NCBI GenBank assembly: GCA_964057225.1
Contig: OZ059898.1
Location: forward strand, 5,394,001 to 5,458,000
DNA: 64,000 nucleotides
Source: Auanema rhodensis
Lineage: Eukaryota; Animalia; Nematoda
Direction of reading: 5' to 3'
Below the pieces are notes generated by a model. It ran no database searches, was not told where the DNA came from, and saw nothing but the letters and a program-made list of their open reading frames with translations. Below, one piece after another: positions 1 through 11,207 of this stretch. A program made the position numbers and the translations under genes. Every line of letters starts with the position of its first letter. Position 1 is the stretch's first letter.

Positions 1-1143
1 CGTCTGTATCCTCCAGCTTGAACGTTGGCGTTGGCATTGCGCTGTGGACATGGACAATATTCGGCATCCTTTCCTGGTTCTCCTTCCTCTCCAGCTTCTC
101 CTGAAGCTCCTGGGGCACCATCGTCTCCCTTGGCTCCTTGTGGCCCGCGTTCTCCTGGTGGTCCAGCTTGTCCTGGGGCTCCAGTATCTCCCTATACATA
201 TTCCATTACAAATGTTCCAATAATATTCTGTACCTGTGATCCATCGTCTCCTCTATCTCCGAGAAGTCCTGGAGTTCCCTTGGCTCCTGGAAGACCAATC
301 TGGTGTTCGACATCCTCTCCTGGCTCTCCTTGGGGTCCTTCCTCTCCGATTGGTCCTGGGGCTCCGATTCCTCCGATGGTTCCTGGGAATCCTGGTTGTC
401 CGTCTCTTCCTGGCATAGCGGCTTGTCCACGAGCTCCGCGCATACCACGTGGTCCTGGCTTTCCTGAGGGTCCTGAACATACATAATATATAATAAGTTA
501 GAAAAATATAATAACCTGCTGGTCCAGCTGGTCCTTGTGGGCAGTTGAAGCATCCAGCGTATTGTTGTGTTTGAGCTTGAGCGTCATCAGCATCTTGTCC
601 ATCATGTCCTGGAACTCCTGGGAGTCCGTCTGGTCCATCGTGTCCTTGTTCTCCCTTTGGTCCTGCGGGTCCGGCGGGACAAGTGTTATCGGCTTTGCAG
701 TTGCAGCTACCGCTTGGTCCGGCTTAAAGATATAATAATGGTAATGATATAATTCGTAGTGACTTACATGATGGTCCGTCATTGAAGGCAGTGTTGCTAA
801 TGGAAGGTGGGACTCCAATAGTTCCGGGAAGGTTGGCTCCAGAAGGATGTGGGCTTCCTCCTGATTCTCCTCCTGGATATGGTTGATCTCCGAAACCTCC
901 TTGTGGTCCTGGGAATCCAGAGCGTGGTGGTGGAGCAGCATAACCATAAGCTTGACGACGAACACGACCGTACTTATTCATATCTCTCCATAAGGAGTCG
1001 GACTCAGCCTTCCAGGAATCCATCTCGGTGTCAAGTTCATTACGAATCTCACTAATCTCTTGAATAACCATTGGGAATGAAACCAAACAGGCCATAAGAG
1101 CAATGGCACCTAGGCCAATGGCTGCGCAGCCAGCCTCGTACAT
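1..1143 (-). CDS. col-17: Cuticle collagen of the SQT-1/ROL-6 group, COL-17-like (3' end truncated by the window edge)
   Basis: Exons 1143-768, 722-516, 472-234 and 191-<1, joined by GT-AG introns of 45, 43 and 42 nt in consistent phase. The protein has a hydrophobic N-terminal anchor (MYEAGCAAIGLGAIALMACLVSFPM), a Col_cuticle_N-like region and a furin site RVRR. It also has Cys clusters CNC..C, CFNC and YCPCP, plus Gly-X-Y blocks. Segments MRGARGQAAMPGRDG, DVEHQIGLPGAKGTPG and CPCPQRN match C. elegans COL-17 as recalled. Collagen identity is certain; the orthologue assignment is less so. Confidence 0.93.
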
Positions 1144-1253
1144 CTTAAAAGAAGAACTATGAATAAAGAAAAAAATTGATTCTAGTTTTAAAGTAATAAT
1201 ATCATATTGAGAAAACCTCAAGATGCAAATGAAGAAGAATGCGATTATTTCTT

Positions 1254-1289: not shown

Positions 1290-1683
1290 TGGAAATATGA
1301 CAAAGGCGGGACAGGTTTGATTATAGATAAGAGGATATTGCAAGGACATATGATTGCAATCAGGCAGGATCTCGGCAATAATATTGCTGATAGACGACAA
1401 TAAGATCTACTATATAGATCCTATCAAACCGAGAATAGAGAAAAGTGTATGGCAAGAATATTTATTCAATTTAAAATAATAAATATACAAATTTGATCAA
1501 ACTGTTTAGTCAAACTTCGAGCATTATTAGTTTATTATAAAAAGAGGTAAGACGGATGTAAAATTATTGTGCTCTGCACCAGCATATTAGTTATTTAATA
1601 TAAAGGAATATTTAATACATATAAAGTAGGAAGATAAGTAAACGAAATATATATATATATATACATGACTGGATTAACCATGC

Positions 1684-3823
1684 TTAACCGTAATATTCAG
1701 TATATTCATAATAAGCAGCATCTTGTGCAGCTTGCATCGAGTATAAGAAAGCAATAACGGAATCCCTTATACTAGTAGAACTTGTAGGAAAATGTCCTTC
1801 AATTTCCGGCATCACCTGCAATTTTCCAATATTTACAACATAAATAGGGAAAATAAACCTCAGATCTTGTGGCATCTTCAGGAACAGGTATACCGAAGAA
1901 ACGGCAATAACGACGAAGTGTAGAAAGAGGAAGAGAAGATAATACACTCTTAAGTTGTGGATACAAAAAAAGAAGATTTGCAAAAACTATTACCTTATAA
2001 CCTCCATCCGGAATTATATCCTTATATCCATCAAAAAGTTCGTTTCTTGCTCTTCTCGACAAAAAGTAATCATGATTCTAAAGTAAATAGATAACTATAT
2101 AATTTAAAAAGTTCTTACATGACTTAATAAATGTTTATCACGCAACTCTTCAATCTCTTTTCGATTAACAACAAAATCATAATCAAAATTGTCGTCAGAA
2201 TCAGAGCATTCATCATAAGTATTGCTGAGATCATTATGGCCCTTCTTGGATCGTTTCTCAGGTCGTCGTTTTTTTTTGAAATGTTTTTTTGAAGCATATA
2301 TTGGCTCTAACTTCTCAACAACAATATGTTCATTATCCGTCAGATCAAAATCGACATCGAGTATTTCAGCTGCTTTAGTTTTCCCGGATAACAAATGAAC
2401 TTGTACGGTTTTCTTTGTATGTGCGGGATTAGTACAAATTGTTTGAACAGAGCTATCTGAAAAAATAATACAAACATTAAAATTTTGGTATATTCTGACC
2501 ACCTAGCATACTGCTTCCATCGTAAGCTCTAAGGGTAAAATTATTTTGATTTGTACAGAATGATGAACCATCTTGGATTGTTTCAATATTTGTATTGGTA
2601 GAATATTCGTCAACAGATTCTTTTTTAACTTCACATTCTTCTAATTTCGTACTGGTTTCTTCTTTTATCACGACCACATTAGAATCACAAAGCTCCATGT
2701 GTTCATCAGTGTCCAGAAAGCATGATTCCGAATAATCATCATCCTTTATGGTAGCTACTTCAGATATAAGACGATGCATACCAGGAGGAATTCCTTCAGT
2801 TCTTCGGCATCTATATTTAGTCCCGACAAGCTGATATCTTTCTGGTTGCCTGTAATATTACATCTTGGAAAATTTTTTGAACTTTTACAAAAACTAACAC
2901 AATCAAAGGGTCTATAAAGCCTTTTTTAATATTAAGAGCGCTCTTTTTCTTCAATTGTTTCGAACAGACTCTCGGAGCAGTACTAGCTTCGGCCGTAGGA
3001 TCAAAAGTAGTAAAATCACATGGAGGAACGTAAATGCTCTCTCCGGGTATGAACTCTTCTTCACCTCCAGCTTCATATAAAACATGAGCAAAATGTTCCG
3101 ATCTCAAGTGTTTTCTTTTGATAGCTGCTTCATGCTGAAAGTTAATAAAATTATGTAGAAAACTGAAGTCAAACGTACCTTGTGAATTCTTAAATTTTTC
3201 TCTAAAATCGTTTCCTCGTAGCATATATTCTCGACATCGAAATGAGCATATGTTTTTGTTTTCAACGATCGGCCTTGTGGACTGTACTTAATTACTCTCC
3301 AGTGAAATCGACAGAGCAAATTGTGTTCAGCCTATCAAAAAAAATTAAAGATATATCTGAGGAATAAAATAAATTACTTCTCGCGCAATTGCTATTGGTA
3401 AACCTTTTGAAGTGGACATGCATTGCAAAGTCCCGGTTAAAGATCGTTTTCCGATAGGTCGAGTACACCTTTCATATCCATTGGGTGAAGCTTGTGCAAT
3501 ACAACATCTGTACAACCCCTATTTATAAAAATTATAACATAGCAAAAATAATAATCAACTTACGTCAAACGGAGGGTCAAACTTTGGTAAAGGTGGTAAA
3601 AACCAGGGCTTCGTTTTATTTTTCTTAATTTTTTTTTTCATAATTTTAGCCTGAATAAAAACATGTCAAAACAAAAAAAATAAAATGCTACTTGTTCTGG
3701 AAAGTCTTCATGGTTGCGGAACAACGGATATGCTGTAGTATTTTTCGATATGCGAGCTACATTACTTATTAAAGCCTTTCGAAATTCATTAAACTCCTTC
3801 ATTGTTTCCTCCGGAGATAACAT
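1684..3823 (-). CDS. SAP30: SAP30/SAP30L-family Sin3-HDAC complex subunit homologue, ~580 aa, with an expanded central linker
   Basis: Predicted exons 3823-3692, 3650-3564, 3518-3378, 3331-3179, 3134-2899, 2849-2500, 2456-2119, 2077-1994, 1948-1859 and 1815-1684 (1743 nt, all GT-AG, introns 41-49 nt). The N-terminal CC..ERC-x35-C-x2-H motif matches the SAP30 zinc finger. The C-terminal LSSLPLSTLRRYCRFFGIP...GHF...FLYS aligns without gaps to the SAP30 Sin3-binding domain. Confidence 0.85.
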
Positions 3824-3825
3824 AA

Positions 3826-3832
3826 CTGAAAA
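3826..3832 (-). other. Candidate SL trans-splice acceptor (TTTTCAG) of the SAP30-like gene
   Basis: Consensus nematode 3' splice site 2 nt upstream of the ATG, preceded by a U-rich tract, with little room for an upstream exon before dnc-2. Confidence 0.65.
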
Positions 3833-4058
3833 TAGAAATGAGAAAAAAAACTGTAGGAAGCTCAAGGAAATTAAAATTATAAATTTAATAAGCAACTTGA
3901 AATATGCTTGAAAAGGTTGAAAAGCTGCTCGAGCGTTATTTCTGCATGAAAGCGTCGTGGGACCAATTGTTTTCATAGCGATATAATATAATTCCTTAAC
4001 GATTGGACTAAAAGGCTACTACATTTTTTATATTTAATTTATTCGTAACTTATCTAAA
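3833..4058. promoter_or_regulatory. Bidirectional promoter shared by the SAP30-like gene and dnc-2
   Basis: The divergent start codons (3823 on minus, 4059 on plus) are separated by only 235 bp. Confidence 0.65.
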
Positions 4059-5501
4059 ATGGCATCTGGACCTAAGGAAGATGTTTATGAAAGTGAAGAT
4101 TTACCTGAAGTTGATCAGAATGTCTTTCCTCGAGATGAGTCAAACAATCCCAACATTGAATTGGTGAGCTAAATTTAAACAGAACTAATTTAATAGTAAT
4201 AATTAATAAATTACTTGATGGTTTTCTGCAGGTTCATATTGATATTGATGCTGCTAAGAAACGATATGAAGGCAAAACTCTTAATGTTGTAGGAGTTGGT
4301 GAGATAAGGTTATAATGCTTTTTTGAAATTGTACATTTAGACTTTTCTGATTCTATTGCTAAAAAAAGAATGAAATGTTATGGAAGTAATGCTTATGTTC
4401 TAGAAGTTGTTGGCAAAGGTAATTGTTTAGATGAAAGTTTATTCAAAATATATTTATTTACAGAGTATTCAGAACCAGAAACATCTGAGCAAAAAATTAA
4501 TAGATTAACCTATGAATTGAATGAGTTGTTAGATGGTCTGAAGGTAAACGTTCCAGATGCTAGAAAAGTCATTATAAGATTACAGAATGATACAATTTCC
4601 GAATCGGAAACATTGAATCCTGCTGCAGTAAATGAGTTATTGAATGAACTTAAGGTCTTGATGTTATAAGAAAGATAAATGAAAAGTTAATGTTTTACAG
4701 AGTGTCAAAGTTGCCAAAGAATCTGGAACCAGCACTGTACTGAATTTGGAAAAAGTGCCTAAGAAAATTTCTGCATTAAATGAAGCAACGGTATATATTG
4801 CAATATCTTTTATGTGAATTAAAATCTTTATTTGAGTTAATTCCGCTGGAGCAACGTTTAAGAAAGCTGGAAATATTACTTGGCCCTATTGATAGTACTA
4901 AACAGCCATTACTTGATGCTTTGGAGGACCTTAAGTAAGTTTATTTTAAACGGTTTTCTTATTATTTCACCTTTTTAGATTCCGTACTGAAGCTTTAAAT
5001 CCTACAATTGTTGAAGGGCTCGAAACTCGACTAAATCATGCTATGACTAAACTGCAACAGGCAATATCTAGTCTTGAGATAATTTGTAATTTGTTTTTAG
5101 ATTGATGAAAAAAAAGAAAAGAATGTAGAAGGTGATGTAGAGAATAACGTTAATGAAGTTTTGGCTTTAATGAACAAATGGGACGCTTCTTGTTCCTCAC
5201 TTCCAAGTAACGTAAAAAAAGTTCAAGCTCTTCATAAATTACATGAGCAAGGTATGTACTGATTTTTAAATGTTTTATATATGTTTTTAGCCGCTTCCTT
5301 CTCTGAAAGATTATCTCATCTTGTTGGTATCCGCGACCAAGTTGAAAAAGCTATATCTTCCGATAAGGAGATGCTTCGTGAGCTGCAGGTTTGTTGAATG
5401 ATTCATACTTTTATTACTTGAGTTACTTGTAGATGCAAGCTAAAGATAACTTCTCACACATGCTTAAGCAAATTGAAAATTTGGAGAAAAGGTTGGGATA
5501 A
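4059..5501 (+). CDS. dnc-2: Dynactin subunit 2 (p50/dynamitin), ~328 aa
   Basis: Exons 4059-4163, 4232-4298, 4341-4418, 4464-4543, 4586-4654, 4701-4790, 4837-4934, 4979-5060, 5101-5251, 5291-5388 and 5433-5501 (987 nt). Dynamitin motifs present: EDVYESEDLPE, IELVHID, VDFSDSI, ETSEQKINRL..ELNEL, LEQRLRKLE and ALHKLHEQAASF. Confidence 0.93.
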
Positions 5502-9300: not shown

Positions 9301-11207
9301 TATATTGATACCTTTCCAGAAATTTCTGAAAGATATCGCCTTTCAGTTGATCACAAATTTCAACCACATAACGCTGGAAAAATATATTTATTGATAATAC
9401 ACATTTTAAATAAATTTTGTTTTGTATTACCTGAAAAAGATCAGCTGGTACACTCCCTTTTAAAAGATGATATTGCACATGTTGTAATGATTCTTTTGAA
9501 TAATTCTAAAACAAATCGAATATTGATTCAAATTTGTAATTTACTATTCAAAATAGTTTACAAAATTTTGATTGATTGAAAGAGAATAATCAGATTTTAT
9601 AAACATACATGAGCATGTGCCAACATTTCCACCATTATATGATGATCATAGATTTCTCTTGCTTTTGCCAGCCGCTCTTCAGGTGTTTCCATTTTTTCAT
9701 ATTCTTTTATCTGAATTAGAAAAATACAGTTAAGTAGTAGAAATAATATGTGATTATAAAAGTATAAATATAAACATACAGCTTCATAGAATTTGATTTG
9801 AGGACAAGCATTTTCTGTGACATTCTCAGCGAAATCTTTTAATAATAAGAAACCTAGGCGTTGATTAAAAATTTTCTCGAATTTGATTTCTCCAGTTTTT
9901 TCCAAATATTTCTGCATTATACTCCGAACACTGAAAAGGTAAAAATATTTAATTTTCACTTTGTATTCTGCTTCATTTGTTTGAAGTTTTTCATTTCGTT
10001 TTCTTTGAAGATTGGTTTGACAGGCTAGATTGACAAGTCTTTGGGCTGTGTTTGTTATATTTCATTGATATCTTCAATAAACCAGAATTTTATTTTTTTG
10101 TAAATATTGTTTTACTTAAAGTATGGAAAAAAAAACATCTGAAGCTGATCTTTCTACAGATGTTAAAAAATGAAAATGAGGAATGGAAATAAGACCAAAC
10201 GGAGAAGGGAGAAAAAGTGACTTTACTGCTTTCGTTAACATTCTTCTGGATATACTTATACTCTGATTGAACGGACGGAAGTCAAATTGGGACATGATGT
10301 AGATGAGGAGAAGCAGAAAAGTTGATGAAAACATGACATTTCGACACAATATGGTTATGTTTACTGTGTGCCATCTACATGTTTTCGGAAAAAAGTTGTT
10401 ACCTTCTTGAATTGCTTGGTAGAATATTGTGTTATGTGAATGAATATCTATCTACCTATCTACATATTATATACTAACTATATATATGTATATATGTTTA
10501 TATCACCTATATATATATATAAGTAATTTTCAAATATTAAATTTATATAAGCTAACATTTAGAATTGAATAACATACATATATGTATATAACATAGTAGT
10601 ATTGTAGAAAGTTAAATTAGGTACACGGATACCATTTTAATGGATTGAATATATAGATCAGATTATAGAAGTCTATTGATTTTAGAATAAAAAATTTTGA
10701 AGTCTAGATTCAACTTGAACTTTTGTATTAAAAAATGTTAAGAAAAGAAAAATATTGTGTTTTGAAAATTTTCAGCAATAATTACGATGTTGAATTTATA
10801 GATTTGTAAACTAATGGAATATTCTCAATATATCCTTGAAAAGATAACATTATTTTCAAAAACATTTTGAATAATACTATTATAATGTTCTTATTATAAC
10901 AAAGAACTAATTTCAGAAAAATATAATTCAATTTCCTGAATCACAATTCGATTTAAAAAAATGAACTAAATATGATCTGCTATTCTTTGTTCAATATTTA
11001 ACAAAAACATTTACGCATAATATATAATTAACAAAAAAAAAGAAAAAAAAGAAAAACACTTGAGCATTCTTCCTTTAATTAAAATTTTTTTTACCTCGGA
11101 TCAGGCAATACAATCCGTTTACTGGCACGAGCCGCAGGTTGGCTGCGGCTCTTTTCCATAGCCATCAAATAGCTGACATCAGCTAAAACTGCTTCAAGGT
11201 CAGCCAT
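6392..11207 (-). CDS. grk-2: G protein-coupled receptor kinase 2 (RGS-homology, kinase and PH domains), 707 aa
   Basis: 17 exons: 11207-11095, 9930-9780, 9710-9609, 9505-9431, 9373-9312, 9258-9115, 8887-8788, 8738-8583, 8539-8450, 7967-7906, 7819-7714, 7671-7499, 7449-7287, 7155-6987, 6937-6804, 6760-6638 and 6592-6392 (2124 nt). The N-terminus [20 protein letters not shown] is diagnostic. Also present: [55 protein letters not shown] and a PH domain. Confidence 0.98.

Follow-up and report, generated by a model that had tools for sequence, protein, structure and literature searches.

We found that the minus strand of a 64,000-nucleotide stretch of the Auanema rhodensis genome (assembly GCA_964057225.1, contig OZ059898.1, positions 5,394,001 to 5,458,000; hereafter the window, to which all positions below refer) carries a transcribed gene whose product combines the two domains of SAP30, a zinc finger and a Sin3-interaction domain (SID). 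In yeast and mammals, SAP30 is one of the subunits by which the large Sin3/HDAC complex is defined. Both domains exceeded their Pfam cut-offs and the best PDB matches all belonged to the SAP30 family, which agrees with the first-pass annotation of this region, in which a highly divergent SAP30 homologue had been proposed. Judging from sequence, we consider the gene to be a divergent and unusually long member of the SAP30 family, with a probability of roughly 0.8.

The coding sequence is complete and extends from the ATG at 3823 to the stop codon at 1686–1684 on the minus strand. A frame-consistent GT..AG model, for which both strands of the region were considered, divides it into ten exons located at 3823–3692, 3650–3564, 3518–3378, 3331–3179, and 3134–2899 (exons 1–5), and at 2849–2503, 2456–2119, 2077–1994, 1948–1859, and 1815–1684 (exons 6–10). 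The nine introns are all of the GT..AG type and measure 41–49 nt, and the 1740-nt coding sequence is translated in a single unbroken frame into a protein of 579 aa (approximately 66.6 kDa). The window has a G+C content of 28%, and a search for a second copy (paralogue) of the gene within it found none.

Transcript evidence was obtained from Logan contigs of 1915–1978 nt, originating from four runs (X1–X4) of one study. Of the words sampled from the 2.4-kb stretch, a fraction of approximately 0.61 was present in the four runs, which roughly equals the exonic share. The contigs span the gene from around 3831 to 1496–1518 in spliced form, with all ten exons on single contigs. Since they contain no introns, they must be derived from RNA, whatever label the run carries; they are evidence of transcription, and the expression level is not readable from them. 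Eight of the nine introns appeared as exact contig joints identical to the model in all four runs (1815/1859, 1948/1994, 2077/2119, 2456/2503, 2849/2899, 3134/3179, 3331/3378, and 3518/3564, after shifting of the cuts), and the joint ends read CT..AC on the plus strand, equivalent to GT..AG on the strand of the gene. Intron 1 (3691–3651) lies beside a skipped poly-A repeat and is implied by the 87 letters between the flanking pieces, a number equal to that of the letters in exon 2. Neither variant letters nor alternative joints were found in the contigs of the four runs. The first-pass annotation had placed ten exons between 1684 and 3823; our model has the same endpoints and yields the 579-aa open frame on the minus strand, and its junctions, eight seen in spliced contigs and the ninth implied by them, leave the motifs of both domains intact.

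Both ends of the transcript were recognizable. Towards the 5′ end, three contigs agree with the genome as far as 3831, apart from a single mismatch, and continue with five letters that align nowhere, and the fourth contig stops at 3827. A probable trans-splice acceptor (tttcag; 3824–3831, minus strand) is located two bases 5′ of the ATG. The 3′ end of SL1 is TTTGAG, from which the genomic TTTCAG (3831–3826) differs only at 3828, making SL1 trans-splicing a likely reading. Considering the mismatch count and the unaligned letters of the contigs, SL1 is probably added just before the ATG. The 3′ untranslated region occupies 1496–1683 (minus strand), where contigs end at 1518, 1504, and 1496, preceded by an AATAAA at 1536–1531. 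Directly after the stop, this region also contains a (TA)9-like microsatellite (1645–1662), for which no length variants were present in the four runs.

The SID (residues 512–562; 1738–1933, minus strand) was identified from both Pfam and PDB matches. It scored 37.7 bits for SAP30_Sin3_bdg (PF13867), well over the gathering cut-off of 22.2 (E 2.6e-9; profile 1–51 of 53). Among all PDB sequences, the C-terminal segment had one significant match, the SAP30 SID 2ld7 (E 4.4e-4), and the alignment was ungapped over 56 residues, including the F.YS helix. In addition, an Atlas feature search with exons 8–9 found nearest clusters that all carry PF13867 (score 0.80), which we regard as a lead only; the search with exon 3 returned nothing usable.

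The SAP30-type CCCH zinc finger (residues 78–135; 3287–3506, minus strand) was likewise identified from Pfam (PF13866) and PDB matches. The spliced segment scored 25.7 bits for zf-SAP30 against a gathering cut-off of 25 (E 1.2e-5; profile 6–59 of 72), a marginal excess of just 0.7 bits. When compared with all PDB sequences, the finger matched solely SAP30L (2n1u, E 1.5e-4) and SAP30 (2kdp, E 3.6e-3). The zinc ligands of SAP30 are Cys67, Cys76, Cys112, and His115, and Cys68 and His108 are also invariant (He 2009, PMC2673417). In the alignment to 2kdp, all six are kept, as the ligands C78, C91, C127, and H130 and as the other invariant residues C79 and H123, giving the pattern C-x12-C-x35-C-x2-H. 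Moreover, 9 of the 11 positions listed for the hydrophobic core by He 2009 (PMC2673417) are hydrophobic in this alignment, and the remaining two are polar. Identity to human SAP30, as counted from the alignments, is approximately 30% in the zinc finger and approximately 30% in the SID.

These results bear out the particulars on which the first-pass annotation had relied. The spacing of 35 residues between the last two Cys is exact in the alignment to human SAP30 (2kdp), all eight identities listed for this linker (R2, G5, S8, Q14, K20, I24, A30, and H32) are borne out by HMMER alignment with 2kdp, and the four additional residues proposed for the first zinc loop constitute the sole indel there. 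The proposed gapless match of TLRRY-x23-HF-x13-F.YS to the Sin3-binding domain of SAP30 was reproduced against 2ld7. As for the profile searches that it had suggested, the finger passed narrowly and the SID by a wide margin. Both domains are indeed split by introns, the finger between E120 and A121 by intron 3 (3377–3332) and the SID between E536 and V537 by intron 9 (1858–1816). It had been expected that searches with single open reading frames would miss them: the zinc-finger exons taken alone gave no Pfam match, and exon 9 alone did match SAP30_Sin3_bdg (25.4 bits, over the cut-off of 22.2).

The two domains, their order, the CCCH ligands, and the C-x35-C-x2-H spacing are common to the worm protein and to human and mouse SAP30 and SAP30L (2kdp, 2n1u, and 2ld7). 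The order from zinc finger to SID, here on one polypeptide and one transcript, is the canonical order of SAP30. Human SAP30 has a polybasic stretch and then an acidic stretch upstream of the SID, and so does the 579-aa protein. Conversely, human and mouse SAP30 and SAP30L are 183–220 aa long, and their first zinc loop is C-x8-C, whereas that of the worm protein is C-x12-C. The finger and SID modules are adjacent in SAP30 of flies and mammals. The basic run, the acidic run, and the SID come directly after the finger in human SAP30, whereas the worm protein inserts approximately 375 aa after the finger. The compact architecture (approximately 170–220 aa, with just a short basic/acidic segment from finger to SID) is thus absent here; it is a trait typical of animal SAP30 proteins and does not define the family. 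Yeast Sap30, the Rpd3L subunit that defines the large Sin3 complex there, shares the SID family with the Auanema protein and differs from it in lacking a zinc finger (He 2009, PMC2673417).

On balance, we favor a function as a SAP30-type subunit of the large Sin3/HDAC complex of the worm, a reading drawn from homology. The SID would most likely dock on the PAH3 domain of the worm SIN-3 scaffold and thereby bring the protein into a histone-deacetylase complex of the Sin3L/Rpd3L type. In mammals, the interaction between SID and PAH3 is constitutive and tripartite, with an affinity of 9 nM (review PMC7948954). The CCCH finger would most likely provide the complex with a non-specific contact to nucleic acids or nucleosomes, a role proposed for the SAP30 finger by He 2009 (PMC2673417). 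The lineage-specific linker, which is probably disordered and carries nuclear localization signal (NLS)-like runs, may be a flexible tether or offer an additional docking surface.

The status of SAP30 in worms has been described inconsistently. According to Beurton 2019 (PMC6868398), C. elegans has no SAP30, and He 2009 (PMC2673417) reported that the zinc-finger region is missing in the worm. Robert 2023 (PMC10617626) described Y67D2.7 of C. elegans as “distantly related to SAP30” and treated it as doubtful, and a SAP30 phylogeny paper of 2009 leaves nematodes unmentioned. By these descriptions, Y67D2.7 is the obvious candidate for an orthologue of the Auanema gene. It differs from the 579-aa protein in being about half the size (UniProt Q9BKQ7, 33.2 kDa) and, as the worm protein lacking the zinc-finger region in the account of He 2009 (PMC2673417), in the finger, which Auanema has kept. 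The first-pass annotation had inferred a subunit that was overlooked or lost in C. elegans. This claim is only partly new: a published statement of absence does exist (PMC6868398), but the relation of Y67D2.7 to SAP30 had already been noted (PMC10617626), and what the present gene adds is a nematode SAP30 with its zinc finger kept. Standard eukaryotic gene prediction followed by InterPro would probably label the gene as SAP30-like.

The main alternative to a subunit of the Sin3/HDAC complex is that the gene descends from SAP30 but its product acts outside this complex, using the two domains as generic modules for binding chromatin or protein, within a larger protein specific to nematodes that has another partner. 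ARID-1 is a SIN3L-specific subunit, and immunoprecipitation (IP) data for ARID-1 and SIN-3 bear on this point. In the ARID-1::GFP IP, Y67D2.7 was represented by 7 peptides and 10 spectral counts versus 1 in the control (41% coverage), a ratio of 10 that satisfies the enrichment rule of that table, whereas the mCherry::SIN-3 IP contained zero peptides of it (PMC10617626 Table S1). The alternative hinges on this absence from the SIN-3 IP, which suggests that the worm SAP30-like protein may not be a stable partner of SIN-3. It is also in line with the treatment of the worm complex as one without SAP30 (PMC6868398), with a protein of 2.6 times the canonical size and a long novel linker, and with the low identity of both domains to their human counterparts. 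However, the SID is the better conserved of the two domains (37.7 bits) and aligns without gaps, which would be odd if the surface for the Sin3 partner had been abandoned, and Y67D2.7 was tenfold enriched in the ARID-1 IP, although this supports a link to SIN3L only weakly because many background proteins fall into the same class. Overall, we regard a SAP30 descendant that has left the Sin3 complex as unlikely. As a separate observation, the text of PMC10617626 describes Y67D2.7 peptides as absent from the IP-MS, whereas its Table S1 lists them for ARID-1::GFP.

Returning to the reading as a Sin3/HDAC subunit, the retention of both domains in a transcribed nematode gene indicates that a complete SAP30 was present in the ancestor of nematodes. 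A broader proposition, which we put forward tentatively and consider possible rather than probable, is that nematodes never lost SAP30 and have kept it in a complete, fast-evolving, and elongated form with a CCCH finger, the published absences being due to diverged sequence and to domains interrupted by introns. In that case, the corresponding C. elegans protein, either Y67D2.7 or an uncharacterized protein co-purifying with SIN-3 and ARID-1, would be a genuine SIN3L subunit with a cryptic finger. The Auanema gene offers a bridging sequence with which Y67D2.7 and the unnamed interactors of SIN-3 and ARID-1 can be re-examined. Its significance lies in refining the composition of the complex in one phylum, with no new mechanism. 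Several uncharacterized proteins, F26A1.1, F26G5.1, C50B6.3, and K09E9.3, rank at the top of both the SIN-3 and the ARID-1 IPs (PMC10617626 Table S1).

Database searches for orthologues bear on a further alternative, namely that a fast-evolving, low-complexity nematode protein unrelated to SAP30 resembles it by chance. An exhaustive HMMER search of 1.84 billion representative proteins with the 47-aa zinc-finger exon 3, a query short for that library, returned no relative, and the gene’s own product was also absent from the results. This suggests that a protein containing exon 3 is probably outside the library and that any relatives have diverged too far to be found with 47 aa. The sole match (P0001), a protein of 1042 aa with TSP1_ADAMTS repeats and DUF285, was rejected as spurious, its score being summed over ten Cys-rich repeats. 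Word-indexed searches with the C-terminal 150 aa or with a linker-deleted construct (zinc finger, XXXXX, and SID; E ≤10) gave no matches among proteins of up to 262 and 287 aa, respectively, that share 5-mers with the query; these length windows exclude 579-aa proteins and probably Y67D2.7 (approximately 290 aa) as well, and the 5-mer filter excludes distant SAP30 proteins. The outcome of the exon 3 search, a Cys-rich repeat protein and no relative, and the marginal score of the finger (25.7 versus 25) are what a chance resemblance might produce. Nevertheless, two independent domain matches (E 1.2e-5 and 2.6e-9) occur in canonical order, the top PDB match of each segment is a SAP30-family structure, and the 35-residue spacing is exact with six of the six invariant Cys and His residues in place. 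We therefore consider a chance resemblance to be very improbable.

The linker between the two domains (residues 136–511, approximately 375 aa; 1949–3286, minus strand) comprises the remainder of exon 4, exons 5–8, and the initial codons of exon 9, and nothing like it occurs in the SAP30 proteins compared. Its composition is hydrophilic, basic blocks alternating with acidic ones, and it contains a polybasic segment (residues 421–437), after which come an acidic stretch and the SID. The finger is itself preceded by an N-terminal extension of 77 aa with its own basic run, and NLS-like basic runs are found at residues 49–58 and 421–437. Pfam searches with exons 5–8 singly and with the spliced residues 220–330 found no domain in the linker, and comparison of linker segments, including exons 5 and 7, with PDB sequences gave sub-threshold matches only. 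The absence of homologues for the linker and a length far beyond that of canonical SAP30 might also be expected from read-through or fusion of a neighboring zinc-finger gene and a SID gene, but this is hardly credible, given that in each of the four runs an individual contig carries all ten exons and reaches from the trans-splice acceptor as far as the poly(A) region, that there is one uninterrupted frame, and that the introns are uniformly of 41–49 nt with no gap of intergenic size.

A stretch of approximately 30 aa in the linker containing EGIPP..RLI aligns to ubiquitin at approximately 5 bits per ubiquitin unit, and this motif (2780–2800, minus strand; residues ~265–277) is identical to the most conserved segment of ubiquitin. 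We rejected a ubiquitin-like domain, as the beta-grasp is not covered throughout and the Pfam ubiquitin models gave no match; the E-value against tandem ubiquitin is inflated by the repeats within polyubiquitin chains.

Several neighboring genes were also noted in the window. Downstream of the SAP30-like gene, at 192–1221 (minus strand), lies a gene resembling those of nematode cuticle collagens, with an N-terminal hydrophobic segment, a basic RVRRQ cleavage-like motif, and Gly-Pro-rich repeats, in keeping with the nematode origin of the window. An open reading frame at 9597–9959 (minus strand) may encode part of a G-protein-coupled receptor kinase of the GRK2 type, as it resembles the RGS-homology region. 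On the other side, upstream of the SAP30-like gene, a divergently transcribed neighbor (4059–4940, plus strand) starts approximately 235 bp from the ATG. The exons of this neighbor resemble dynactin subunit 2 (dynamitin); the open reading frame at 4370–4666 gives a weak match to the Pfam family Dynamitin (16.5 bits, E 0.0056), and transcript contigs cover the neighbor from 3958–4002 onward in all four runs.
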